DNA of 64,000 bases from Salpingoeca rosetta. Its lineage: Eukaryota > Protista > Choanoflagellata. Position 1 is the stretch's first letter; every line of letters begins with the position of its first letter. Position numbers and translations under genes: made by a program. This document shows, piece by piece, positions 20,517 through 39,203 of this stretch. Under the pieces are notes generated by a model that was not told the origin of the DNA, ran no database searches, and was given only the letters and a program-made list of their open reading frames with translations. Location: assembly GCA_033442325.1 (NCBI GenBank), contig JAWQFM010000007.1, positions 768,719 to 832,718 on the forward strand, in the 5' to 3' direction.

Positions 20517-21764
20517 TTAGTTGGCCGGCGCGAGGGCTGCAAAGGCAAGCTCCTCATATGGAGACGAGGAGCCGCGCTCATAGACAATACATGGTTCGCT
20601 GGCAGGCGTGTGGCCCATGACGGAGTACGCAGCAGGGCCGGGCCACAGCTGCTGGTACACGTGCCAGCGCATGTCATCTGAGGTGGCCACCTGCACCGTC
20701 ATGTTGACGCGGTGGGATGCCGAGTGCGGGTTGCTGAAGTAGAGGGCGCCACCGAGCCGGATCAGCCCTGCCGAGCAGACAGGCTCAATGAGCTGCGGTG
20801 CCCAATATGGGCCCTCCCACGTCACGCCGCCGTCGTGGCTGAGCGCATACGCACGGCAGCGGCACGCGTTGAGATGGCTGTTGCGCATGTTCAAGACAAG
20901 CGTGCCGTTCCAGAGTTGCACCACTTGGCACTCCTGCATCTGCGCAAACACTGAAGACGACACGTTGAAGGTGACGCCGCCATCGTCGCTGTACCACACG
21001 ACGGCGTTCATGCTGTGACCAGCATGGTAGCCCGTCGCCCCGCACCCCAAAATGCGAGCAGCTCTTTGCTGTCGCTGCAGTGAATGCAGTGGTTGCTGTT
21101 GCTTGCTCTCTGGCTCGTCTCCAACTGCGGCTGACGATGGGGGAACAACACCGCCTGCGCTGCGCGGTGCTGTGGCGAGTGCGGCGTGAGGCGGTGTGGA
21201 GAGCTGGATACCGGTGCCAGGCCCTGCCAGCACGCCTTCCCATGGGGCGAGGTTGACGCGCTCAATGCTGCTCCACGTCTTGCCGCCATTGCACGACCAC
21301 CTGTGCTGGTTGATCCACGGTTCTGGAAGGGTGGAGTTGACAAAGCCGACGACCAGCTTCGTCGCACACGCTGCAGAGCCCGGCTGCGAGACCACGGTGG
21401 CGTAGGGGTTGCGGTAGGTGTGGTTGCCCTTGTGGTTGCCAACGAGGCGGGCCAGCTCACTCCATGTCGTGCCATTGTCGTGGCTGCGTTTGTACACGAT
21501 GTCCTTGGGCGACTGGTCTGCACACGACGTGCGCCGCGCTTCCGCAAACACCAACATGGCGCCGTCCACAGTGGCGATCGTCGGCACGCGAAAGCACGAG
21601 TACGACGCCTCCCCTGCTCGAAACACCGTCGACGCTCTTCTCACCACCCCTGTAACAGCAGCCGTCGCCGCTGCCGTCGCCGTTGTCGTTGCTGTAACAT
21701 CCACCACAACTGCCACGGCCGCCACAGCCAGCAGCAGCAAAGCTTGTTGTGCCAGTGTCGCCAT
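20517..21764 (-). CDS. Secreted GH33 exo-alpha-sialidase (neuraminidase/Kdnase family), intronless
   Basis: Signal peptide (MATLAQQALLLLAVAAVAVVV); FRVP (FRIP motif); Asp-boxes SHDNGTTW, SCNGGKTW, SDDGGVTF, SHDGGVTW; catalytic-type residues in SCAD, QECQ, NMRN, HRVNM, AAYS and IVYE. Confidence 0.93.
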   Translation of the reverse strand: MATLAQQALLLLAVAAVAVVVDVTATTTATAAATAAVTGVVRRASTVFRAGEASYSCFRVPTIATVDGAMLVFAEARRTSCADQSPKDIVYKRSHDNGTTWSELARLVGNHKGNHTYRNPYATVVSQPGSAACATKLVVGFVNSTLPEPWINQHRWSCNGGKTWSSIERVNLAPWEGVLAGPGTGIQLSTPPHAALATAPRSAGGVVPPSSAAVGDEPESKQQQPLHSLQRQQRAARILGCGATGYHAGHSMNAVVWYSDDGGVTFNVSSSVFAQMQECQVVQLWNGTLVLNMRNSHLNACRCRAYALSHDGGVTWEGPYWAPQLIEPVCSAGLIRLGGALYFSNPHSASHRVNMTVQVATSDDMRWHVYQQLWPGPAAYSVMGHTPASEPCIVYERGSSSPYEELAFAALAPAN

Positions 21765-21877: not shown

Positions 21878-22230
21878 ATGGATGGCACGGGCAGTGCTGC
21901 GGTTGCGGAGCGAGGACAGCAAGGGCGGGCTGTACCCGCAGAGGCGGCAAAGGAAGAAGATGTGGTGGTGCAGTCGAGTGTGTTTCGCTTCTTTGGGGAG
22001 CTGTCGCTGGACAGCAGCGATGGCGGTGGTGTTGACGGTGATGCTTCCTCAGCAGCGAGAAGCGGCGATGACGCTCAGGATGATGACCACGCGCGCCACC
22101 TTCGAGACGGCGTGATCGCACTTCTGCAGACCCTCTCCACAACATTCGACCAGGGCGCCATCACCCCTGCAACCGTACGTGTAGATATGTGTGTGTGTGT
22201 GTGTAGCTGAGTGTGTAGCCGTGTGTGTAG

Positions 22231-22268
<38 letters not shown>

Positions 22269-23175
22269 GTGTGTGTGTGTGTAGATGTGTGTGTGTGTGT
22301 GTAGATGTGTGTGTGTGTGTAGATGTGTGTGTGTGTACATGTGTGTATAGATGTGCGTGTAGATGTAGTTGTTTGTGTGCGCTGGAAAGACTGGTGCTGT
22401 AACGGACACTCCATCGCTCACCATTCATTCTCACCAATTGTGGGGACAGTGGCATCAGCTGGCGCAAGGTCTGGTGGACGAATGCAAGGCGCGCTTGCGG
22501 GGCGACTACCTCGAGGCAGTGGAGGAGACACGCAAACGGTCAGTTAGAGAGGGATCCGTGTTGCGGGGTGGTGTCGCCGATCGTGATTGTGTCGTGTGTG
22601 AGTGTGCATGTGAGTGCGTGAGTGAGTGTGTGGTGAGTGTGCGAGCGTGTACGTGAGTACGTGCATGAGTGTGAGTGCGTAAGCGCACATGTGTGTGTGT
22701 GGGTGTGTGGGTGTTGCATTCTGCAGCCTGCTCTCATCGTTATCGTCTCGTCTTCTCTGATGTGGTGCTCCTTCGTGTGGCTTGTGGGACGCAGCTTGGC
22801 ACAGCATGTGCCGACGGAAGCGGTAAGATCATCCAGCCCATCACTGCACATGTACTTGCGCACTGTGGACAGATGGACAACCGTGTTCGCTTGCCTCCTG
22901 CCTGTCTTTGATTCTGACTGCTGCCTGCGCTGCGGTACTGTGTGCTGCTTTGCGTTCAGGTGGCCGGTGAGCCGTGTCACAACACAGCAATCGTCATATG
23001 TCCTCCATCCGAGCTGCATGCGTGTATCCAAGCCATTCGGTAAAGCGGCCGTATCGTGTGTGGCAATGATCTGACGCATTCCCACTGTCTCCATCGACTG
23101 CACCCACCCACCCACACACCCACCCACCCACACCCACACACACACACCCACACACACACACACACCACACACACA

Positions 23176-23247
<72 letters not shown>

Positions 23248-23646
23248 ATACTAATGAAGTACACTCTAAAAACAGCTTCCCCACATCCCTAGATCCACGA
23301 ACGCCTATCTCCCACCCGCACAAAAGAAATCAAGAACTCAGATAAAACGAATAGCCCCACGAATGTCTGCCAATGTATGCTATAACGACTCAATAAACAG
23401 GAGCCAGGGGCCCCGGAGTCCCGCTTCCGGTTCGTACGAGCTACTGAGGAACCTGAGCAGTACAGTTAATCAGACGCCACCCGAACCTCCGGCCAAGGAT
23501 CAGTACGAAGCTGAGCCCGCCGGAGTCTGGAAGAGTAGGCGATTCGNNNNNNNNNNNNNNNNNNNNNNNNNNNNNNNNNNNNNNNNNNNNNNNNNNNNNN
23601 NNNNNNNNNNNNNNNNNNNNNNNNNNNNNNNNNNNNNNNNNNNNNN

Positions 23647-23700
<54 letters not shown>

Positions 23701-24146
23701 CACACTGTTCCTGCTTCGCAGCCGCAAGTATGACAAGCGGCACGTGGACATCTGGCCGCCGCACATCACCCTCTTCTATCCGTTTGTGCAGCCCTCGCGA
23801 TGGCACGGTTCGTGAGGGCCCCTCCTGCGATGGTCACTGCAGCTGTAGCCATGTCTCACGTGCACATGTACCCGCAGAGTGGAGATGAAGTTAACGGGAA
23901 GAGGACAGGAACGAGACATGGCCGCACTTACATACAGACACACACACACGCACGCGCGCGCACGCGACGCAAGCCAGTTCTCACATTGATCATTTGATCA
24001 CATCACACATTGTGGGCAGAGGTAAAGGTGCGACTGGCGTCTGCGCTTCAGCGGGTGATGCCCTTCACGCTCAACCTCAACTCCTTTGGCTCCTTCAACC
24101 ACGTACGCTGCATGGATGCGCTCTCATGCTGTTGATGGTCCTCTCC

Positions 24147-24185
<39 letters not shown>

Positions 24186-24288
24186 CCCTCCCCACCTCTC
24201 TCTTTTTCACACGTATATATACACACACACACACACACACGTGCACACACACACACACACGTGCACACACACACACACACACACACGT

Positions 24289-24362
<74 letters not shown>

Positions 24363-24739
24363 ATACACACGCGCATGTGCAGGGAAAGCGGGGGCATGTG
24401 ACGTGGCTGCGGCCCGAGCCGAGCAGTGCCATTGAATCGCTGCACGCAGCAATGGTCGATACCCTCTCCCATATGGGCAGGTGGTCGAGGATGAAGCAGC
24501 CGCACATGACAGTGGCGCGGTCACAGCCAGCGCCCCTCACGCAAGAGCTGCAGCAGCACTGGACACCAATCCAGTTTGAGGGTGCGCGCGTGCGTGTGTG
24601 TGTGATTGCTTTTTGTGGTTCTGCGTGTTGCAGGCGAAGGGCCGCATGTCTTGATGTACCATTGTCGTCTCCCTGCCACTTGAATGGTGTGCTAGATGTT
24701 CAACAGGTGTTGTCATGCCCAGCTTCAGTTTAACACGTT

Positions 24740-24786
<47 letters not shown>

Positions 24787-27351
24787 AACGTGCGTGCGCA
24801 TTTGCGTGGCCACTGCTTACGCTGTGCATGTTTGGGCGTGTTTATGCCTCTGTGCTGCCACCGTTGCCAGTGGATCGCGTGTATCTGCTGCAGCGCACCA
24901 GCAGCAAGAGCCCGATGCAAGTCGTTGGCGAAATCCAGCTGGGCCGTGACAGTGGAAGTGATGATGACGGCGATGGTGGTGGTGACAGTGCACAGCAGGA
25001 GCAGCAGCAACGCCGCGGTGATGATGACGCAACTAACAGCGCTCTTCGCAGCCTCCTGCAGGTGTGTACGAGTGTAAATGCACGTGTATGCGAGAGAGAG
25101 AGAGTGTGTGTGTGTGTGTCCATGTGTGTACTTGTGCACCTGTGCGTCATTTACACATTGCCAGTGGATACAGGCGTGTGCATGTGGGTTTGCTGAGACG
25201 ACTCGGGAAATCAGCGTTGTTGTCAAACCACATCATTGGCTCACGTCAACACCACTTGCTTGAATGCGCATGCCAGGCGTTGAATGCATCCGTGCGAAGA
25301 GGAGTCATCACCCGCTCTCGAATGGTGCAGCTCAGACGGTACGCGCGTTTGACCTTCTGCCCTGTTTGGTTTGTTCTGCTGCTCTCGGCCTCTTTTCACC
25401 ACATGACACGTCCACACACACACACACATAACACACATAACACACATAGCACACATACACACATACACAAACACACACACACACATACACACACACATAA
25501 CACTCATACACACACACACACACTCATACACACACACACATTATCTCCCTTCAGGGCGCTGCTGCCGCCGCCACTCGCCGTTGCGGAGAATGACCGCCCG
25601 TCTGTGGAGGAGGAGATTGAGTTCGCTGCGCGTGTGTTTGAGTCTGATGGCGTGGAGGTGCAGGACGGCACCACCGTCATTATTACCGTCGATGGCAGCG
25701 GTGAGAATATGGCTGACATGTGGTGGGAGTGGGAGAGTGTGTGTGCGTGTGTGTGCTTGCGTGTGTGCTTGTGTGTGTGTGTGTGTGCTTGTGTGCGTGT
25801 GTGCGTGTGTGCGTGTGTGCGTGTGTGCGTGTGTGCGTGTGTGCGTGTGTGAATGTGTGAGTGCGTGCTTGTGTGTGTGTGTGTGAGTGAGTGTGTGTCT
25901 GTATGGGTGAGAGTTCAGCACTGGCGTCCTCATGCTGTCGCCCTTGGCATCAACGTTGCCTGCCTGCGTGCCACTGCCTGGGCTAGTCCTCCCCTGTCCC
26001 TCACTTGTTGCCCTTGTGCATTGGTGTGGGTCGTTGCGCGCGCGTCGCCTTTGCTTTGTTCACGCAGACGATGGTGTTCAGGCAGTTGTGGACATTTCCA
26101 TCGCATTTGACGATAACCATCCCAACGTCACTCCACGCGTCACCATCCACAGCGCACAGAACCTCACGGCTGCCCAGCAGGCCGTGCTGGCGCTTGTGCT
26201 GAACACACACACGGAGCACTGGTTCAACACACCGCTGCACCCGTTCGCCCCCGAGCAGTTTTTCGTGTTCAGCGTGTTTAACACAGCAGCGCACTTCCTC
26301 CGTGACGAGCAGAGCCGTCTTGGCACAGGTGCACGATGGTGACCCTGCCGTACCATATGATGTGATGTGATGTAATGCGATGTGTGTGTGTGTGTGTGTG
26401 GAATGCATCATGTGTTTGTGGTTCACTTCATAACAGCAGTGTGTGTTGCACAGATTGAATGCTCACGTTGTCGCGTCTGATGTTTGTTGGCCGAATTTTT
26501 GTTTTATTTCCAGTGCGAGCCGTCCACTCTGGCGGTAAGCCCTCCGTGACAGTCAACAACACCACCACCAACTACAACCACCTGCTCGAATGGAGAGACG
26601 TGAACACGAGCACCAAGCAGCAGGTGCGACAGACTGAAATGGTGGTTGACGCCAGGACAAGAGGCACCCATGCCTTACCACTTGTGTTTGTCGTCGTCGT
26701 CGTCGTCGTTGTTGTTGTTGTTGACTTGAACATAGGCGGCGTGCCTCGTTTGGATTGTCGTTGCCATCGCCACCCCCCATCATGGAACCTACCTCATCCT
26801 CCATCTCACAACTTGTCGCCACATTGATCTCAACTGCATCAATACTGTTCTGCTGCTTGATACATTGTGACACGACCACCAACCAGCTTGGGACACTCTC
26901 TGTCCGGGAATTGGACACGCTCGTCTATCGCGCTCTGCTCAAGCACATGCACACGACGTTGCGCAAGCCCACACGTGAAGGTGGACGCCAGCGCCGGTAT
27001 TCCGCTCGCCTGACACATGTCGAAAACGTCCTACACCCAACGTTGCTTGAGCGCTACAATGAGGCCGTGGCCAGGCTCCTTGACACGGGGGCTGTCCACG
27101 ACAGGTCGAACGCACATGCAGACGAGTATCCAGAGGAAATCAAGGTATTGAACGCTGCTGTTTCGTAGCGTACTAAGAAGGGGGCGTCTTTGCCTCGTGT
27201 GCTCGCAGGTGTATCGATGCAAATGAGTGCCGACCGACCACAATGGCAGGCACATTCACATGCACACACACACACACAAATGTACTCACTCACGCACGCA
27301 CACACACATGTACTCACTCACGCACACACACACACACATACACTCACACTC

Positions 27352-27415
<64 letters not shown>

Positions 27416-29161
27416 GCCAGACGCTGTTGCCGCGGTTGGCGTTCCATGGTACGTGCGAGCGAAATGTTGCCGAGAGCATTGCAAATCAGGGACTTGTCGC
27501 TCCCGGGGACTTTGACGACAGCGGACGCTACATCGGCATGAAGACAGGGTAGGATGCATACATGGACACATGTTTCTGATCCGTGTGCAATGTGATGCTT
27601 GAGTGTGTGGACGTGAGATGTGCGCACATGTTCACCATGTGAGCTGCTGTGTGCATGTGTGTGTGTGTGTGTCAGTGCCCTGTACGGTTCCGGCAGCTAC
27701 GTGTCGCCCAATCTGCTGAAGAGTCACTGGTATTCGTACCAGGACGCACGTGGACACGCGCAGGTCATATTCTGTTCCACTGCTTTGTACCACTTGGTGC
27801 TGTTGTTGTATGCACCGTGTCATCTTGAGCTTGGCCATCACGCTAACACGCAACCGAATTTACACCAATCATGCAAAACACACGCGCTGACATATCACAC
27901 GACGTACGATCACACGCACACACACAAACATACTCACTCACGCACACAAGCACACACGAACACATACATAAGCACACTCACACGCGCCCACACACACATA
28001 CATAAGCACACTCACACAAACACACACACACACACACACACACTCACTCACTCATAAACACACATGCACACCATCACTACCGCCCTGCAGATGCTGGTTG
28101 GCCTGGCCATCCCTGGCCGCTGTCGTCAGTTCACCGCCGATTCCATTTCCCAAATCAGACGTGACGGACTCGAAATCCACGATCTTGAGTGGTACGCGCG
28201 CACATGTGCAGCGATTACGGTGTGATTGTGATGGCGTGATTTGTGTGTGGTACCTTCGTCCTGCCGTGTCACGTTTGCCGCGTTTCACGCAATTGCCGCT
28301 GCCATCGCCACTGCGTGCCGTGTGTCTCCACCACAGCGACAGTCACACGGACCCGTCAAAGGAGGAGCTGATTCTGTACACATCCGACCTCTTCCTCCCT
28401 GTTCTCCTCATCGAATACGCACTCACGGATGAGCAAGTCAACCCACCCTCTGCCCCAGCCCTCAAAGGTGAGGCAGCAGACGCAAACGCTGGCTTAATTG
28501 TGGCTGCATGGGCCATTGAGAGGAATTGTCGACTGTGGTGAACACACGGTGAATTCTCTCCGATAGTAACCACGCTTTAACGGCAACGCCCCCGCCCCAC
28601 ACACGTGGCTGCATGTGTTTGCGTGCGCGTTCAGGGTCTGTGGAAGCACTCGACGATGTGCAGCAGTTTGCTGTCGCCCATCTCCTCTCCCTCCCACCGT
28701 CATCATCGTCATCATCACCATCATCATTGTCATCATCGTCGATGCCGGCGCACGGCGAGCCATCAGCGGCCAAGCAGCAGAAGCAGCAGAAGAAGAAGAA
28801 GCACGGAGGCAGCGCAGATGGCGAGAAGGGTGAAGTGAAAGGTGAGTGGAACAAGTTGATGGCGGCACTGGGTCCGCGGACGAAGCAAACACTGCAGCTG
28901 CAGCTCACACAGGAGCACTGGCTGCTCGAGCTGCGCCCCGCACTCTTCCAGCCCGCCACCATGCCGCTCCATGGTGGCGGCGGCGGCGGCGGTGCTCACC
29001 ACCACATGGTGTTGTGTCTGGCCCGTTTTCCGGACATCAAGGGCAGCATGCTTTCGGACCTTGCATCCGGCGTGGAGCTCCTCATTCGGTATCGGTGATG
29101 TTCGTGGTGGTCGTCAGTTCGTGGTGGTGTTAATTGGTGGTGGTGGTGGTGGGCACGCATC

Positions 29162-29192
<31 letters not shown>

Positions 29193-29522
29193 GCGTGTGT
29201 GTGTGTGTGTGCGTGTGTGTGTGTGTGTTGGTGCGCGCGAATGCACGAATGAAGAAACACACGTGACAGTGGTTGAGACGCAAAACCCTCCCTGCTGCTT
29301 GCCAACTCACGGTTGCTTACCACACATCGTACACCGCGCGTCGTGTCGTGTGCAGGCAATCTGGGGCGCATTCCGTGTCGGTTTTGGTGTTTGATGAAGC
29401 CAAGAACAAGACGCAGTGCCATCTCGCCCGCATGCCTGCAAGCAACGCGCTCTCCTGGCTCTCGTCCTCTGACTTCACAAGCACATTCAAGCACACGTCC
29501 ACACCAGCATCCACGTCATCAA

Positions 29523-29566
<44 letters not shown>

Positions 29567-32500
29567 CTCCTGGCCATGCCAGTGCAAGACGCGTTGGTTG
29601 AGGCAGCCTTGCGGGCACACGACACGCTGACTGCCAACATGCGCGCTGACGCATTTGCGGAAGCCGAAAAATGGCTGCACCTTGACCTATGCATTGCCGC
29701 TCGCGCATTCAAGGTTGTCGTGTGTTTGTGTTTGTGTTGATATGTGCGTGTATGTGCACGTGTGTGCGTGCACGTGTGTGTGTGTGTGCGCATGTGTGTG
29801 GATACCTCCCGCGCGCGCTCTCTCTCTCTCTGTCTGTCTGTCTGTCTGTATGTTGCATTCACGCCGTGCATGCACCGCCGGCAACGTTGTTTGCATGTCT
29901 TCAGGTGGAGATTGCGGATGGCGTGACCACCGCTGATCCCACCCGGACACAGCGGTTTGCGCTGCATCCCAAGGTCGACACTCTTCGTGCCTCCACGTCG
30001 CTACAGCGCAAGGTCACATACACCAGCATGGCAGTTTGGTTTGCACAGCCACGCCACACCGTTGTCTATGGTGGCTTTCAGGGCACTCAACACACAAAGC
30101 ATGCTGCCTGAGCTCGCAAACACACAAAACCCAACTCTGCAAAACACACTACAACAAATGTACACGCCGGGAAGCACTCGCCCCTCACCACTACACATTG
30201 CACTGACGTCATGTCTTTGTGCATGTTACTCAACACCAGGTGTTTGCGAGTGTTGAGAAGCGGTTTTCCACCAGCGCTGGCGGTGGCGACAATGGGGACG
30301 ACAGGACGGTGTCTTCCCTCAAGGAACTGCTGCCTGCAAGCACGTACCAGGCACAGCTGCAGCGGCGGGTGGACCTTGTTCTCGCTGCGTTCCAAGACGA
30401 TATCAAGCACACGTTGACGTTGTTTGTGCCGACACAACAACGGGCGTCTGGGACTGGCATCGCATTCACAGACGTGGAGCTCGCACGACTGCGCACCCGT
30501 CTGCAAACGTACGTACACCCACATCATGTTGGGGTGGGACATTGACCTTGAAGTTTTGTCAGCGTGTTTGCTTGCTTGCGTCGCGTCTTCAGCCCACATG
30601 TTCGGCTCTCTGCAACTGTTGTTGTTACAGCGCCATGATTTCTTGCTCATCATCACCACCACAATCTGTCGCTCCCCGCACGTTCCCCACATCCATTTCA
30701 CACACACATACACACATACACATACATACATACACACACATACACACACACGTACTGCGTGTTCGGTTGGCGAGCAGCAGTGGTGTGTCGTCGCTCCTGC
30801 TGTTGATTTCTTTGGGCAAAGGACTTCTCTCCCCGGAATACGTGCGCCTGAAGCTTGCACTGCAAACCGTCTCGCTGTATGAGCCCACACAGCACTACAA
30901 CGCAGCCAGGGCCAGCCTGCTTGTGCCCACCTTCAATGAGGCTGCCAGATTTGTTCGCCGCACCGTGGGTGCAACCCTGCACATCTCCGTCTCCTTTGCG
31001 GAAGAGGCGCTTGGATGGGGGATTGTCACGAGTCTTGTGCAGCGGCCTGATAGCCAGGCGACGGTGTGCGTTGACCGCTCAACGTCGTCTGTGTTCCTGC
31101 TGCTTCGCGGGCGTCCACCACGCGACGTGTTTGTGAACGGAATGCGTGTGCGTGTGCGTCTGTCTGCGCGACCAACACTGCTCAAGCAACTGCGCATCAA
31201 GCACAAGCCGCCGCGCCAGCAACGTCTCGAAGGCAAGGGTGCAAGTGATGGTGATGATGATGGTGATGATGGCGGTGGCGATGATGACAACGGTGGCGAC
31301 ACACAGGGGGTAGAGCACAACATCTCCTCATCATCAATGCTGACGACGGCTGCGCTTCACGCGCAAATCCTTCGTGCTCTCGGCACATTCACGTCGCAGC
31401 TGAAGGTGTGACGAAGGAGATGGATTGTTGTCAGTGGCGAGGTGCTTGATGCTATTGTGTTTGAAAGTATTTGGACTTGCTGCGACGGCTGTTTGCGTGT
31501 ATATGCGATTGTCATGGGGGAGTTTTGCTCGTGAACAAATGTACTTGCTTTGATGATCAAGGGCCTCACCAATGACACGAACACACACACATACACACAC
31601 ACACACACACATAGGCGGTTGCAACGCATCAGCACGATACTGTGCGTCTCGGGCTGTCATTTGTGCATTCGCTCGTCAAGCAGCTGCAGTCTGAGCCACT
31701 CAACATGGATGAACTGACGACGCTTGCGCCTGCAAGCCGCATGGGGGTTGTTGCTGATCGCAAGCGGTTCCTGACACATCTACAGCAACTTCTCAACACA
31801 ATTCAGTTCTGCTGCGACGCCGCCCTCGACCAGACACACACGCCTGCAGAGATACACACGTGGCTTGTCAAGGTATGGAGCCGGGGCGGGAGAAGGAGAA
31901 GCAGCTCATTGATGTGCGTGTGTGTGCTGAATGCTCAATTGCGTTGGTAATATCACAACTGTGCGTGTTGCTGGACTTCTTGGCCACGATACGCGTTGTT
32001 GTTGTGCCCGCATGTACTCATGCTCTCCCCCAACACGCACGCGTATGTGTTTGTTTGCAAGGCCTCTGAGATGAAGTACGGTGCGCGCGCGCTGAAGCGG
32101 TCAAACATCGCGTCCATATCTGTGCGCGACATTGTGACAAATCTCCACCACCGCACATCCAGGGTTGCCGCCATCACCGCGGCAGACACAGCAACAAGTG
32201 CCAGCCGAGACGTGTCACTGCACAGCAAGCTGTCGTGGCTCCAGCACCTGCAGCACATGGCACGCCACGCTGCCGAGCTCAGTGCACGGATCACGCCACG
32301 TGGGCGAACTCGTCATCGCATTCCCTTTACAACTGCGCAGCTGCTGTATGTTGCGGGCGTCACCGGTGCGCTCGTCCGCGTGCAGGGCAGCGAGGCCGCA
32401 AACGTCGATCCATGGGCGATCAAGGTGTGGCTGAGTCTGTGTGTGTTAGAGAGAGAAAGAGAGAGAGAGAGTGTGTGTGTGTGTGTGAGGGCGCGCGCGT

Positions 32501-33286
32501 GTGTGTGTGTGAGGGTGTGAGGGTGTGTGTGTGTGAGTGTGTGTGTGTGAGGGTGTGAGAGTGTGTGTTTGTTTGCGTGATTGTGTGTGGTTGTTATGTG
32601 TGTGCGCGCGCGGGATAATGCGAGTGAGTTGACTGTTTCTGCTCGTCTCCATGTCTTGATGATGAACCTGCAGTGTGTGTGTGTGTGTTTGATGGCGCAT
32701 AGCTCACATGTACGTGCATGTGTGCGCTCGCTTGAGTGTGCAGGTGATGGCGGTGTCGTGTGATTTCTCCGATTCGGCGAGCGCAATGTGTGCACTCGAC
32801 AGCAATGTAAGCAGACTCGCACAAGTGTGTGGATATGGACAGTGTTTCGATGTTCGTGGCCATCACTGTTATGTCAGGGCAACTTCATGTATCTTCTCCG
32901 TATTCACCCGCACAACACAACGCAACACATGCCCGAACAACACAACCCATACCCTAACAACACAACACAACGCACCCCAACACGACGCAACACATCAGGT
33001 TCCGCTGCATGGGCGGCGCCGAGGAGCGACGAGCAATCAGGATCATGATGATGATGATGGTGATGATGATGATGGTGATAGGAACGAGGTATTCAACGGC
33101 GTACTGCCGCTGTGCCCGCCAGAGGCTGCGTCCATTGCTCACGGCATTGTGGCCTCGAAGCTTATGCGCGCGTACCATGCTGTGCTGGTGACGCGTAACC
33201 CAAGCCTCGTTGTGGGCCAGCAGCGCATCGCTCTTCTCGCCATCGCCCTCGCACAGGCACTCCGCCAAACCATGCAGCCACAGCAC

Positions 33287-33379
<93 letters not shown>

Positions 33380-35425
33380 CTAGAGTGCGCGCTTTTGCAT
33401 GGAAACCGGTTTGTTGTGAGACGAACAACGGCCGTCTCGGCAGCTCGCTACTTTCTTTCTCGCTCCTCCCACAACCACATTCCTTGTCCTTTCTACGGTA
33501 TTCTACCCTGACTGTGTCGCGCCATCAACGTTTCACGGCAGAACGCCTGCCATGGTGGTAGTGCTTGCACGCATTGCGCACGACTTATGCCTGGAGATCC
33601 AGCGACGTGGTGAGTGCGCCCACTGGCGCGGAATTGTGCGCAAGCTCATGCAACCGATGCCTGGCCGGTTTCTGACGGAGGCTGAGGGGGATGACATTGG
33701 GAGCGTTGCCAAGGTTGTCGCTGCCGTCACCATCATGCTGCGCGATGTTGTGCGCGAGGGGATTGCAACGCCAACAGACACAGGTGTGCTCGCGCGCACG
33801 TATGCGTTTATGTGTACTTGTGTTGATGTTGTTATGTTTGTGTGTACGTGAGTTGGGTGGGGGGATGTGTGCGCGTGCGGGTGTTGCTTGCGCTCGCACT
33901 CATTCATTGTGCTCGAACATGACGAACACCGTGTATGTTTTGGTTCACAATGACACTGCACGATGTCATGTGCCAACAGCGGCGAAGAGCACACGTGTGG
34001 ACGACGCTGCCCTCGCTGTGTTGGCGGAAAGCGTTTCCCGCGGTGTCCGGATCTTTGTCAAGCAGAAGGTGCTGCTGTTGTGTGTGCGTGTGTTGTGAAT
34101 TGGGTGTGGTTTGAGCATGAACTCTCATGCGATGCGTGGATATCTCCTCTCCTTTTTTTTTTTTGTACGTCCAATCCCGTCCCACCCACACGTCATCTAC
34201 ATCACCACCACAATTAGGCGTTCCAAGAGAAGCGAAAGATGGCGTACGAAGACCTACAGCACCGGCTGTTGCAGCACACCCTCAACATCGATCCCGACGA
34301 TCACGTGCACGCGCGACTGGACGACGAGCCGGAGCCGGTGAGGACGTGTGTGTACTTGTGTACTTGTGTGTGTGTGTGTATGCTCGTGCGTGTGTGTGCG
34401 TGTGTATACTCGTGTGTGTGTGTGCGTGTGTGTGCGTGTGTGTGTGCGTGCTTATGTGTACTTGTGCGTGTGTGCGTGTCTGTGTGCGTGTGTGTTTGGG
34501 TCGTTCAGGGACCAAAGGTTAGATGTATGTGTTTGTTCTTGTGCGCAGTTTTGTGCATGCAGTCTGAATGAGGCGTGGATAGTGCTGTTGTCTCCTTGTG
34601 TTGTTGTGTTGCTTGTGCTTTACTGACGAGTGCACGCTGCTGTCACCATTCTTGCGCCAGCATGGCGTCCAACACGATGCGAGCTTTGATATGGAAAAGG
34701 CCAAACTCCGCAGCGGCAAGTTCTTCCGGCAGCGCTGGACAAATTGTCCACCACAGGCGGTTGTGGCCGCGTTTGGGTTTGTCAACGTCCTTCTCCGCAC
34801 GCTGCACAAGCACAGCCGCGGCGTCACTGTTGGCGATGATCACAACAGCCGCCCTGCCGGGAGCGGTGGTGATGGTGGTGGTGGTGGTCAGTCGATGCCT
34901 TTGGCAGCAGAGCTTGCGGCGTTTGCATGGCTGGCAAACGAGAGCGACGCGTCAGCGGCTGCGGCGCGGAGCGAAATTGCGCAGGCCATGGCGACTGTGA
35001 CGATGGCGTCATTTGCACACAAGTACACCCATGACGAGTGTGGTAGGTCGAGAATGAGGAATAGAAAGCAACAGCGGATGGGGGTGGGGGAAGGAGGGGA
35101 GACAGGGGATGAGGAAAGGTTGCTGGACAAGTGGGATGGCGGTGTGGCATGTCCCTGTGCTGACGCGAACAGCGTGTTGTCGTTTGCTTCAATCCACCAC
35201 TTGTGGTTGTCTTGTCGTGCCCGTTGCTCATCCTGTCTGCACGCCCCCCTTTCCTTTGTCATGTTTCCTCTCAGACCATTGGGACCTGCAAGTTGCACTC
35301 TTTGTGCAGGCGTTGCAGCGCCACTCCAGCAAGACCCGCCGGTACTGTCTATGTCTGTGTGTGTTGTGTGTGTGTGTCTATGTGTGCGTGCGTGCGTATG
35401 TGCGTGTGTATCTATGTGTGCGTGC

Positions 35426-35464
<39 letters not shown>

Positions 35465-36708
35465 ATGTGCTTCGTAGCTGCCAGTGGCGTGCTTGCGTCG
35501 TCGTGCGTTGAGCAACATTGCACCAACACCCCATTTTGTCACCTTCACCACAGAAATGGTCTGCCGAGTCTGCGTGACTCGCGTGCAATCATTCAGCGCG
35601 CAGCTGCCAGCGTCCGTCAATACAACTACAAGCGGTACGTGCACGTGGGCGCGGTTGCATCATGTGTTGTTGAATCAGATGTTACGTTGCGTGTACAGCT
35701 CAGTGAGTGCACGAGTTATGCTCCAGCTTACTGTGTCCAAAACGTCGTGATGCAGGGAGGTTGCGGCCAAGATCCAGCGCCTGCGCATTGCGTTCCTCCA
35801 AGGTGGGTGAACAACTCAGCCTACTTGTTTCTCCCAACAGTGTGTGTGCTTGTGCGTGCGTGCGTGCGTGCGTGCGTGTGTCTGTGTGTCTGTGTGCGTG
35901 CGCACATGTGTGTGTGTGTTCAACTCATTTCATGCGCTTCTCCTTGCATATCATGCTTGCAGGCAACGCCGCCGCTAAATTCCAGCTGAAGCTGCAGGAG
36001 CAGGACGAGTTCTTGCAGACGCATGACGGCGTTGCTCGCGTATGTTGAGGGCGTGGACGAGGCGAACAGCTCAGCCTTGGGCTGCGCTATTGCGAGCCGC
36101 ACATACACACACACACACATATATGTGCTCTTGTGCTCTTGTGCGTGCATTGCCTCACTGCTTACTGGTGGTGTTGGTGTGTACGTTATGTGCAGATGTT
36201 CACGCCCACGGAGGTTGCCGAATTCAACGCGACGCGCGCTGCTGACGACCAGATTGAGCTCACGAGCTCTGGACTGCCGAGGCACCACTGCGCCTTCCCC
36301 AAGGTGTGGTGTGCCGTGGTGTGTCGTGGTGTGTCGTTGTGTTGTGTTGTGTCGTGTTGTGTTGTGTCGTGTCGTGTTGTGTTGTATTGTGTTGGTCCTT
36401 CGTGCTGTTTGATGTTTGTGTGAGCCTTCCCACCCCCCCCTTCTTTGTCCACGCCTTGAGTGGTTCATCAAGATTCAATCATCGTCAATTCACGAGTGCC
36501 CTGGTGCGTGCTCACCGCTGGCACTGCAGTGTCCCCAATATCTGGTCAACCTGTCGACGGACCGTGATCGCGCGCTCGGGCTGCGTCAAGGTGTGTGCAT
36601 TGTGTGTGACATAGGACACAGATGAGAGGCTATGAAGACGACAGTCTGAGTGCTCGCAGTGTTTGCAGTGCTTGAGATGATGCCCCAGCTGTGCATTCCA
36701 CAGTGTAC

Positions 36709-36777
<69 letters not shown>

Positions 36778-37446
36778 AGACTCACAATGCACGGTTTCAC
36801 CAACGGGGGTGACGCAGGACTTGTACGGGCCACTTGTCAAAGTTGTTTTCTTCCAACGCTGCAGAACATCAAAAGGGCTCCACCTCTACCCCACCCCGTT
36901 TCCTCCNNNNNNNNNNNNNNNNNNNNNNNNNNNNNNNNNNNNNNNNNNNNNNNNNNNNNNNNNNNNNNNNNNNNNNNNNNNNNNNNNNNNNNNNNNNNNN
37001 NNNNNNACGCCACCCCGTTCCTCCACAAGTACGCACGAATTTGCGCGCGCGCGCGTGCATCGTCATGCTTTGTTGTTCCTGTTTGTGCTCGCTGTTCAAC
37101 TTGACCTCATCCCGTCACGCCATGTGCACTCTCTCGTTTGATTGCGTCCTTGCCGCAGGTCGAAGGACAAGGACACCTTCATTGCCCTCTCGCTCAACCA
37201 CCTTCCAGTGGATGTACGCGTACCGAAAGCACACACACACATGTGTGGACATGCGCGTGGTGTATGCGCACATGCGTTTGTCCAAGTCCATGCCCACACA
37301 ATAATACCTCACACGATGCGTACTCACGTTCGTTTGCTCTCCACCACCAACCACATTTGGTCTCGTAGGTCACGGACAAGACAATTCGACGACTGGCAGT
37401 CGAGGTCCTGGGGGATCTGTGGGGGGATGTACGCGGCAGCACGTGA
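21878..37446 (+). CDS. Giant multidomain protein (~39 exons, roughly 2,200 aa): 2H phosphoesterase + RWD + PARP-like ADP-ribosyltransferase (H-Y-E) + degenerate vWA + uncharacterised C-terminal region
   Basis: Exons traced with consistent splice phases from ATG 21878 to 36590 (one intron spans the 23547-23646 gap). 2H: [30 protein letters not shown] and [10 protein letters not shown]: [11 protein letters not shown]...[21 protein letters not shown]: [30 protein letters not shown]. vWA-like: DIKGSM, VSVLVFD. The last exons cross low-quality sequence and a gap, so the 3' end (…DVRGST*) is less certain. Confidence 0.8.
23547..23646. other. Assembly gap (100 N)
   Basis: N run inside an intron of the 2H-RWD-ART gene. 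Confidence 1.
36907..37006. other. Assembly gap (100 N)
   Basis: N run near the 3' end of the 2H-RWD-ART gene. Confidence 1.
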
Positions 37447-37490
37447 TGTGTGTGTGTGTGTGTGTTTGTGTGTTTGCGTTTGTGTGTTTG

Positions 37491-37570
<80 letters not shown>

Positions 37571-37922
37571 CGTGTGTATGTGTGTGTTTCGAGTTGTCTG
37601 CTGCACTGGTGGTTGCTTGGGTTGTTTTGATTCTTGTATGTGTGGGTTTTGGTTGCCGTGTGCTGGGATGATGGGATGATGCAGCATGTACAACTGTGAC
37701 CCTTTCTTGTCCTTCACACGTGTTTGTTGCTCGCTTGCCTGCTTGCGTTTGACTTGTCTGCACCACTGTGTTGCTTTGTCTCTCACACATGTGTACACGA
37801 TGAAATCGAAAACGACCACCACGACCATCACCATGGATCAACATACCGCCATACACGAGCAGTCATGTGTCACACAAGCCCCCAACAACACCCAGGGCCT
37901 CCCTCACTGTGCCTTTGCATTG

Positions 37923-39203
37923 TCAGACGAGCTGGCACGTGTTTGGGGACCAAGCAGCCAACCAAGCAAGCATGCCATCGTCGCCTTGGTCCCCAGCTGA
38001 TGATGGCGGTGTGGCACCAACGAGCTCGCGTGCGTGCACGCCCATGATGGCTTGAACAAAAAAGGCTGGGTCTAGTGATAGCCTGTCATCTTGCGCCTCC
38101 AGCAACCCCATATCCACGTGTTGTTGTTTTTGCTGCTGCTGTGCGACGTCGTCTTCGCTGCGCGGTGGGTGGTCGTTGTTTGCTTCCGGCTGCCACTGGA
38201 GCAGGGCGTACTGGTACGTGCCGCTTCGTTGCACGGTGCCTGTGTATGTGAAGGGAGGCGAGAGGGCTGGCGGTGGTGGCGGGAGCACGGTCACCTGGAG
38301 GTCGGCCTGGGTTGGCTTGCGCAGCAGGACCATGTCGTTGCCCGGCGAGTCTGGCATTGGGGCGACGCAGGCGCGGAAGTGATGTTGGCGCAAGTATGAC
38401 CGCAGCTGCTCGCGGGAGAGGCCCGTGCCGGCAATGGGGACGTGCCTGAGGAAGGCCATGCCACCTGGTGCCAGGAGATCGTACACTGCGCAGACGGCCG
38501 CGATGGGATCCACCAAGTGGTAGAAGGTGTGTGATGACCAGATGACGTCAAAGGCGCCTGTGAGGTCGCGTTGTGGCTCCTCAGCCAGGCTGCTCAGGTT
38601 GTCGATGTTGGCGACGCAGTAGGACGAGTCCGGCACAGCCGGCGTCGTGCTTGGCGAGCGTTCGTCCACGGCGGAGATGCCAAGCATGCGGTCAAAGGGC
38701 CAGCCCAAGGACGTGTGCAGGTGGGCTAGCAGACTTGCCGTGCCTGTTCCGAGATCCAGCAGCCGAGGGAAGCGCTGCTGCTCCGGTTGTGGTTGTGATT
38801 GTGCATGTGGGTGAAGGTAAGGTGGCTCCTTGCTGCTGCTGCTGGTGGTGGTGGTGGTGCTAGTGGTGCTGGTGCTGGCGGTGGTGATGGTGGCGGTGGC
38901 GGTGGCGTCACTTGCGTTGTGGCCGCACCCTTGTTGCTCCGTGCTCTCATCATCGACGTCGTTGTTGCCTGTGCTGTGTGTGATCCACTTTGCAAGGATG
39001 GCACTGAACAAGGCATCGGACGTGGTGTATCGCCCGTCTGCATCCAGATACAGCGTCTCACACCCCTCACCCGTGTACACCCATCCTTGTCCCACCTGTT
39101 GGTGTGCCTGTTGTGCTTGTTGTGCTTGTTGGTGTGCTTGTTGGTGCTGGGTGAACTTGGTGTCGCACGCCGCTTGCACAGAGGGCGGTCTTTGCTGCTG
39201 CAT
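37923..39203 (-). CDS. Class I SAM-dependent methyltransferase, intronless, substrate unknown
   Basis: Single long ORF with motif I RLLDLGTGTAS and FDVIWSSHTFYHLVDP...YDLLAPGGMAFL. Confidence 0.85.
   Translation of the reverse strand: MQQQRPPSVQAACDTKFTQHQQAHQQAQQAQQAHQQVGQGWVYTGEGCETLYLDADGRYTTSDALFSAILAKWITHSTGNNDVDDESTEQQGCGHNASDATATATITTASTSTTSTTTTTSSSSKEPPYLHPHAQSQPQPEQQRFPRLLDLGTGTASLLAHLHTSLGWPFDRMLGISAVDERSPSTTPAVPDSSYCVANIDNLSSLAEEPQRDLTGAFDVIWSSHTFYHLVDPIAAVCAVYDLLAPGGMAFLRHVPIAGTGLSREQLRSYLRQHHFRACVAPMPDSPGNDMVLLRKPTQADLQVTVLPPPPPALSPPFTYTGTVQRSGTYQYALLQWQPEANNDHPPRSEDDVAQQQQKQQHVDMGLLEAQDDRLSLDPAFFVQAIMGVHARELVGATPPSSAGDQGDDGMLAWLAAWSPNTCQLV

Follow-up and report, generated by a model that had tools for sequence, protein, structure and literature searches.

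Here we describe a giant gene of the choanoflagellate Salpingoeca rosetta, which lies at 21878-36625 on the plus strand of a 64,000-nucleotide stretch of contig JAWQFM010000007.1 (the window, in whose coordinates all positions below are given; every feature of the gene is on its plus strand). It is one real, expressed, multi-exon gene that an annotation artefact has split into three in GenBank, and its product combines, in this order, an N-terminal helical region, a YjcG-like 2H phosphoesterase, an RWD domain, a PARP4-like ADP-ribosyltransferase (ART), a low-complexity linker and a module of ~1,100 amino acids (aa) of unknown fold. We consider the gene and its domain architecture highly probable as described, and for the explanation taken as a whole, namely a single gene with this layout, an artefactual split in GenBank and a probable way for the product to work, we put the probability at roughly 0.7.

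The merged gene model comprises 35 exons and 34 GT-AG introns, with a CAG acceptor in 31 of the 34, and its coding sequence of 6,417-6,486 nt gives a protein of 2,138-2,161 aa; the introns are 121-682 bp long and (CA)n-rich, with a near-universal CAG end. The RNA evidence consists of two stranded RNA-seq runs (raw reads X15 and X16) and two Logan contig sets (X4 and X5) over the region 23647-29646. Mapping of reads and contigs yielded 12 listed GT-AG joints, from 23807|24020 through 29088|29356, and a single 4,373-nt Logan contig (record 5 of run X5) carries ordered exons from 24383 to 29507. In the stranded runs the first mates fall almost exclusively on the minus strand, which, given the usual stranded library, indicates RNA from the plus strand. 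Across the 14 exons defined by RNA-derived junctions (24020-29719) one frame contains no stop, against 16 and 36 stops in the other two, and the 2H, RWD and PARP parts share this single open frame across the RNA-joined exons 23807-29507. The target of the last RNA joint, exon 29356-29716, holds the annotated Met of the GenBank gene PTSG_03571 in frame with no upstream stop; the RNA contigs stop within the (TCT)n Ser-repeat of this exon. An earlier note on this DNA, made from the sequence alone, had read ~36 exons from 21878 onwards as joined by GT-AG splicing with no stop, and had proposed that one polypeptide links 2H, RWD and ART. The RNA-seq junctions keep the frame continuous across these three parts and into the PTSG_03571-start exon, and together with full-length collinear orthologs, Pfam and fold matches they bear out the single polypeptide; the exon count became 35, of which the part from 23807 to 29507 is joined by RNA and the remainder follows homology and the GenBank model.

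Orthologs extend this picture over nearly the whole length of the protein. A complete 2,230-aa transcriptome open reading frame (ORF) of S. infusionum (P0007) aligns with the merged 2,161-aa protein in a single blastp high-scoring segment pair (merged residues 136-2152 against 124-2150, 31% identity, 826 bits), a complete 1,971-aa transcriptome ORF of Hartaetosiga balthica (P0005) likewise aligns in a single segment pair over merged residues 134-1897, and a protein of 2,305 aa (P0015) is another full-length family member. These full-length collinear ORFs, in conjunction with the in-frame RNA joints, indicate that the three GenBank models are fragments. The models lie on the plus strand of scaffold GL832962.1 of assembly GCA_000188695.1 (window coordinate minus 19,575 gives the locus coordinate) and cover 21878-23538 (218 aa), 24058-29098 (727 aa, with Pfam 2H and PARP matches) and 29576-36625 (1,165 aa; PTSG_03571, XP_004995302.1); the last of these was also retrieved (P0001) when a C-terminal exon was searched against 1.84 billion representative proteins.

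We attribute the three-way split to an assembly gap and a low-complexity exon. The gap (23547-23646) lies within intron 23040-23721 and costs no coding residue: the flanking exons 22960-23039 (CAG acceptor, GTAAAG donor) and 23722-23807 read through 'CHNTAIV...IQAIR|' across their junction and are collinear with S. infusionum and H. balthica at every position, free of indels, which argues that the gap is intronic. At the 5' end, the N-terminal region of ~130 aa (exons 21878-22174 and 22450-22542) was assigned by homology only; it aligns with the orthologs, with which it has an SSxFRF motif in common, and the 218-aa model is therefore taken to be part of the gene, with the ATG at 21878 as a plausible start. 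The donor near 22542 was picked on phase alone and is uncertain. At the 3' end, there is doubt about the last acceptor: the annotated one, a GAG at 36461, inserts 23 aa that are absent from every relative, whereas the CAG acceptor at 36530 yields 'HHCAFPK|CPQYL', in perfect alignment with the orthologs, which favour it over 36461. The end at 37446 given in the earlier note lies beyond what we could follow, as the annotated stop is at 36625 and homology is traceable only to ~36595, where the family profile match ends too. The relatives extend ~80 aa past '...DRAL..R.G'; a search of 36590-38600 with the ortholog tails gave no convincing match to the missing tail, part of which could lie in the gap at 36907-37006, downstream of the annotated stop. 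A codon-bias dynamic-programming model of the gene had introduced spurious exons at 23401-23534, at 26553-26740 and past 36590, and was superseded by the RNA junctions and orthologs.

As to the domains, the earlier note had placed a 2H domain at ~22960-25000, an RWD domain at ~25555-26328, an ART domain at ~26888-28430, a vWA domain at ~29000-29710 and more than 1000 aa of helical-looking sequence at the C-terminal end. The places given there for 2H, RWD and ART agree closely with those found here. Profile searches recovered the 2H and ART folds, the RWD domain was found where expected, and the C-terminal part proved to be a mostly helical conserved module with no known relative; the vWA domain was given up. 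The 2H phosphoesterase occupies aa 136-305 (22960-24945, 5 exons). Profile and motif evidence confirms it as a predicted YjcG-like 2H domain with both catalytic HxT motifs intact, HITL at 23762-23773 and HMTV at 24503-24514, each kept in all orthologs. The Pfam profile PF13563 (2_5_RNA_ligase2) matched two single S. rosetta exons at E 2.5e-5 and 1e-8 (35.8 bits, cut-off 27) and the orthologs at 75-80 bits (E 1e-21 to 1e-22), NCBIfam PRK13679 matches the ortholog 2H, and the best solved relative of the 2H profile is Bacillus subtilis YjcG (PDB 2d4g, E 1.3e-6). Human PARP4 was not matched by the 2H profile in the PDB.

The ART domain spans aa 537-771 (26887-28467, 5 exons) and is recognized by Pfam, by PDB profile and by fold. 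On this evidence we could confirm it as a predicted ART of the PARP type and, more specifically, as one closest by profile to PARP4. The catalytic triad is formed by the His in AFHGT (27439-27453), the Tyr in GSGSYVS (27686-27706) and the Glu in EELILY (28362-28379), and this H-Y-E triad is invariant in five members. PF00644 scored 13.5 bits on a single S. rosetta exon and 26.8, 25.1 and 34.3 bits on the ortholog domains, against a cut-off of 26.7. The family profile matched human PARP4 in the PDB (8swy at E 9e-7; 8swy, 8sx1 and 11jf spanning 9e-7 to 2e-5), the next families being PARP12 and PARP14 at E 0.012 or worse; the PDB entries label PARP4 a mono-ADP-ribosyltransferase. In structure comparison, the ortholog model, which is of low confidence, gave VIA Z scores of 11.2 for PARP10, 10.5 for PARP15 and 8.2-8.3 for PARP4, and the TASOR pseudo-PARP is also among the fold matches. 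Six-frame genome searches with PF00644 and PF05773 did not list the giant-gene locus because single exons are too weak.

For the RWD domain (aa 364-499; exons 25555-25700 and 26068-26328) the evidence lies in the fold. An AlphaFold2 (AF2) model of the H. balthica region, with a predicted local distance difference test score (pLDDT) of 60-72 over the domain, matched the human GCN2 RWD in VIA with Z 11.4, a root-mean-square deviation (rmsd) of 3.1 and 118 of 128 residues aligned; six other RWD domains followed at Z 8.7-10.1, with RWDD1, RNF25 and yeast GCN2 at 10.1, and most E2 and UEV entries scored lower than the RWD entries, at Z 5.6-9.5. Foldseek with the ortholog-region model returned RWDD3 and RWDD1. 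By its modelled fold, the presence of a putative RWD domain is thus confirmed. The motif HPNVTP (26118-26135) stands in place of the YPxxxP of RWD domains; this HPxxxP form is kept in four sequences, and no Cys follows it in the three that were checked.

Between the ART domain and the C-terminal module lie a Ser/Lys-rich low-complexity linker and a poorly conserved alpha/beta region (aa 772-1079; 28635-30012), with no domain match. It is here that the vWA domain had been proposed, and we reject it: Pfam gave no vWA match in any member, region profiles against the PDB matched neither the vWA and VIT domains of full-length PARP4 nor any other vWA, no metal-ion-dependent adhesion site (MIDAS, DxSxS) motif is visible, and the AF2 model, at pLDDT <50, has only some three strands before it turns helical, a model poor enough to leave a degenerate vWA a small chance. 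The C-terminal module itself (aa ~1170-2140, ~1,100 aa) is single-copy in the S. rosetta genome. It opens with a conserved exon (30778-31405, aa ~1169-1378) that AF2 models as short strands at pLDDT <50 and that has relatives in 11 representative proteins; its best-conserved part (33209-36265) shares 44-50% identity with the orthologs, the same range as over the last 560 aa; and a conserved Cys/His motif, HHC..x..C.QYL..L..DRA (36283-36595), straddles the last intron near the end and may bind metal. AF2 models this best-conserved part as all-alpha over ~420 aa at pLDDT 65-90. The module found no relative in Pfam, NCBIfam, PADLOC or the PDB (full-length human PARP4 included), nor in IMG/VR or the GTDB species genomes; an ESM Atlas feature search gave no usable match for it or for the RWD region. 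Foldseek, VIA and Atlas searches with the C-terminal model returned only generic helical matches, among them a three-helix bundle (Z ~11), the UBR4 E3 module (Z 9.5, rmsd 6.0) and ARH3 (E 0.37). Two other proteins share pieces of the module: in one of 849 aa (P0009) a part of it (aa ~1191-1605) follows leucine-rich repeats, and in one of 2,574 aa with a CPAF-like PDZ domain (P0004) an ~80-aa stretch of it (aa ~1198-1277) matches 13 stretches.

The subfamily was found in at least four choanoflagellates and in marine microbial ORFs. Intronless ORFs of 1,700-2,190 aa (L003-L013; P0010-P0012 and P0016-P0018) occur on marine (TARA, SOLA) and mixed-culture metagenome contigs with a GC content of 62-73% and tightly packed neighbouring genes, and they agree with the giant protein in PARP core and C-terminal module, with no 2H detected. 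Region-wise searches for protein homologues did not reach beyond the query, a single close ortholog or unnamed ENA proteins.

Three other explanations of the locus have to be weighed. If GenBank were right, there would be three adjacent, separately translated genes, of 218 aa, 727 aa (2H and PARP) and 1,165 aa (PTSG_03571). Three models are indeed listed in GCA_000188695.1, and the RNA contigs end at ~29507-29543, inside the Ser-repeat exon; however, they break off within low-complexity (TCT)n sequence, where assemblies commonly fail, and the first split sits at the assembly gap, whose flanking exons are collinear with the orthologs. Moreover, the joint 29088|29356 takes the 727-aa frame into the PTSG_03571-start exon with no intervening stop, and three transcriptome ORFs from other choanoflagellates cover all three parts, which leaves separate genes very improbable. 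We rate only a little higher, as decidedly unlikely, a simple S. rosetta orthologue of the vault PARP (PARP4) whose catalytic domain is followed by a vWA domain. PARP4 is the best solved relative of the PARP profile, and a mid-protein catalytic domain with a long C-terminal extension is also what PARP clade 5 has (PMC2964712); against this, BRCT, VIT and vWA were undetected in the giant protein and its orthologs, matches to BRCT, PARP, VIT and vWA occur together at a separate locus of the same genome (C18), and the C-terminal module does not match the full-length human PARP4 present in the PDB set. It is likewise unlikely, if somewhat less so, that the enzymatic domains are relics and the protein is chiefly a scaffold acting through its RWD domain and C-terminal module. 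PARP families do include pseudo-enzymes, as the TASOR fold match recalls, the Pfam PARP scores are near the cut-off, and the RWD and linker regions are weakly conserved; the 2H and PARP domains, on the other hand, are among the best-conserved regions, with 38-54% identity to the orthologs, and no full-length member has lost either HxT motif or the H-Y-E triad.

Several observations also weigh against the single multidomain gene that we favour, or against parts of it. The exons before 23807 and after 29507 were placed by homology and the GenBank model, without an RNA junction, and an internal promoter yielding a C-terminal-only transcript is possible. The Pfam RWD profile scored 14.9 bits on the S. 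rosetta exon, below its cut-off of 22.8 (E 0.03), and found no match in the ortholog regions, while a sequence profile search reached the RNF25 RWD only at E 1.3; the model behind the RWD fold is of the H. balthica ortholog rather than of S. rosetta, and overall confidence in the AF2 models is low (mean pLDDT 46.8 and 53.6). In addition, the metagenome relatives show that the 2H domain is not essential to the core family.

A second locus bears on what the giant protein may do. C18:459001-468900 on the plus strand (L002) carries, in order, BRCT (E 1.9e-12), PARP exons, 2H (PF13563, E 4.8e-22), VIT (E 2.3e-32) and VWA_3 (E 2.6e-5). Its 2H is 30% identical to that of the giant protein over 165 aa (E 1e-12), with HIP as its first HxT motif. 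From these matches the locus looks like the true orthologue of PARP4 (vault PARP), into which a 2H domain has been inserted after PARP and before VIT. Two apparently independent fusions of a 2H with a PARP4-type domain in one genome suggest coupled chemistry, on nucleic-acid ends or on an ADP-ribose cyclic phosphate, and the earlier note's idea of coupling RNA-end or cyclic-phosphate processing to ADP-ribosylation is a reasonable proposal. Because the H-Y-E triad is intact and the closest solved relative is PARP4, the PARP domain would be expected to transfer ADP-ribose from NAD+, and the 2H domain probably hydrolyses a cyclic phosphate linked to the ART reaction. Some PARPs ADP-ribosylate phosphorylated RNA ends; one option is that the 2H opens RNA 2',3'-cyclic phosphate ends and the resulting phosphorylated end is then modified by the ART. 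The RWD domain and the C-terminal module might serve as docking parts. We offer this mechanism, that is, coupled 2H and ART chemistry on either kind of substrate with docking by the other two parts, as a tentative possibility. We further speculate, as a rather unlikely but more general idea, that the substrates of PARP4-type ARTs are nucleic-acid ends bearing a phosphate or cyclic phosphate, or that these ARTs generate an ADP-ribose cyclic phosphate, in either case together with a dedicated YjcG-type 2H, that this pairing became fixed twice in S. rosetta (the second time apparently in the PARP4-like locus), and that the C-terminal module is a new targeting or effector fold; if true, this would provide a first mechanistic handle on vault-PARP-type enzymes.

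These results put right a gene that the reference genome of a model choanoflagellate wrongly divides into three, and they define an undescribed PARP subfamily, in which a PARP4-like ART is joined to a ~1,100-aa module without known relative. The novelty lies in the full architecture and in the family; the pairing of 2H and PARP was already public as a pair of Pfam matches on the 727-aa GenBank fragment. The earlier note knew of no characterised protein with this architecture, and our literature search agrees: no paper was found on a 2H, PARP and RWD architecture or naming PTSG_03569, PTSG_03570 or PTSG_03571, and two surveys of the PARP family (PMC4245714, PMC2964712) make no mention of 2H with PARP. 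The occurrence of 2H and ART together at two places in one genome suggests, from context, a possible tie of PARP4-type enzymes to the chemistry of cyclic phosphates or RNA ends, an idea that is open to tests with recombinant domains in an organism that is genetically tractable and close to animals.

The surroundings of the gene and its RNA data yielded some further observations. Upstream, on the minus strand, an intronless ORF at 20517-21764 resembles BNR/Asp-box sialidases (PF13088, E 5.8e-14) and is divergent from the giant gene, 113 bp from its start codon; the 4,373-nt RNA contig reaches ~1.4 kb past that start codon, and its length would fit an unstranded contig continuing through this sialidase-like neighbour. 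Downstream, a GenBank methyltransferase gene of 426 aa (PF13489; 37923-39203, minus strand) bounds the 3' end. Within intron 27764-28090, RNA contigs and reads contain a 30-nt piece (27911-27941) whose flanks there are unrelated on either side, and in five reads it also joins 24582 on the opposite strand; a dispersed repeat or a chimera could explain it. At 24415, an exonic position in the 2H domain, C>T was seen in four of the seven reads of X16 and in none of the eight reads of X15, and C>A at 27929 was seen in several RNA runs; both variants could reflect strain polymorphism or editing.

Compared with known systems, the giant protein recalls each of its relatives in part. With PARP4, or vault PARP (clade 5, characterized by a mid-protein catalytic domain and a long C-terminal extension; PMC2964712), it shares the closest solved catalytic domain, the H-Y-E triad and the position of the ART mid-way in a protein that is very long and extends far past it at the C-terminal end; in contrast to PARP4, it and its orthologs are without BRCT, VIT or vWA domains detected by Pfam, 2H and RWD stand in the N-terminal part instead, no similarity between the C-terminal module and PARP4 could be detected, and a separate PARP4-like locus exists in the same genome. 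With GCN2, RWDD1, RNF25 and Listerin, all of which bear RWD domains, it shares the fold (Z 10-11.4), with HPxxxP at the position of YPxxxP, whereas the sequence similarity falls below the Pfam threshold. Earlier surveys have pointed out links between PARP and E2-fold domains (PMC4245714, PMC2964712), and proteins of the PARP6/8 clade carry RWD or UBCc domains; the S. rosetta PARP, however, is PARP4-like and not of that clade. YjcG-like 2H enzymes share both HxT/S motifs and a full-length profile match with the 2H domain described here, although the bacterial proteins stand alone at ~170 aa, whereas this one is embedded in a eukaryotic protein of ~2,100 aa beside an ART. Finally, the pairing of an NAD+-using ART with a 2H that handles cyclic phosphates is shared with Tpt1/KptA and the 2H cyclic phosphodiesterase of tRNA splicing and RNA repair, a partnership whose enzymatic logic has been laid out (PMC9503650); in S. 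rosetta, by contrast, the ART is PARP-type rather than KptA-type, an RNA substrate is only proposed, and the two domains are carried on one chain.

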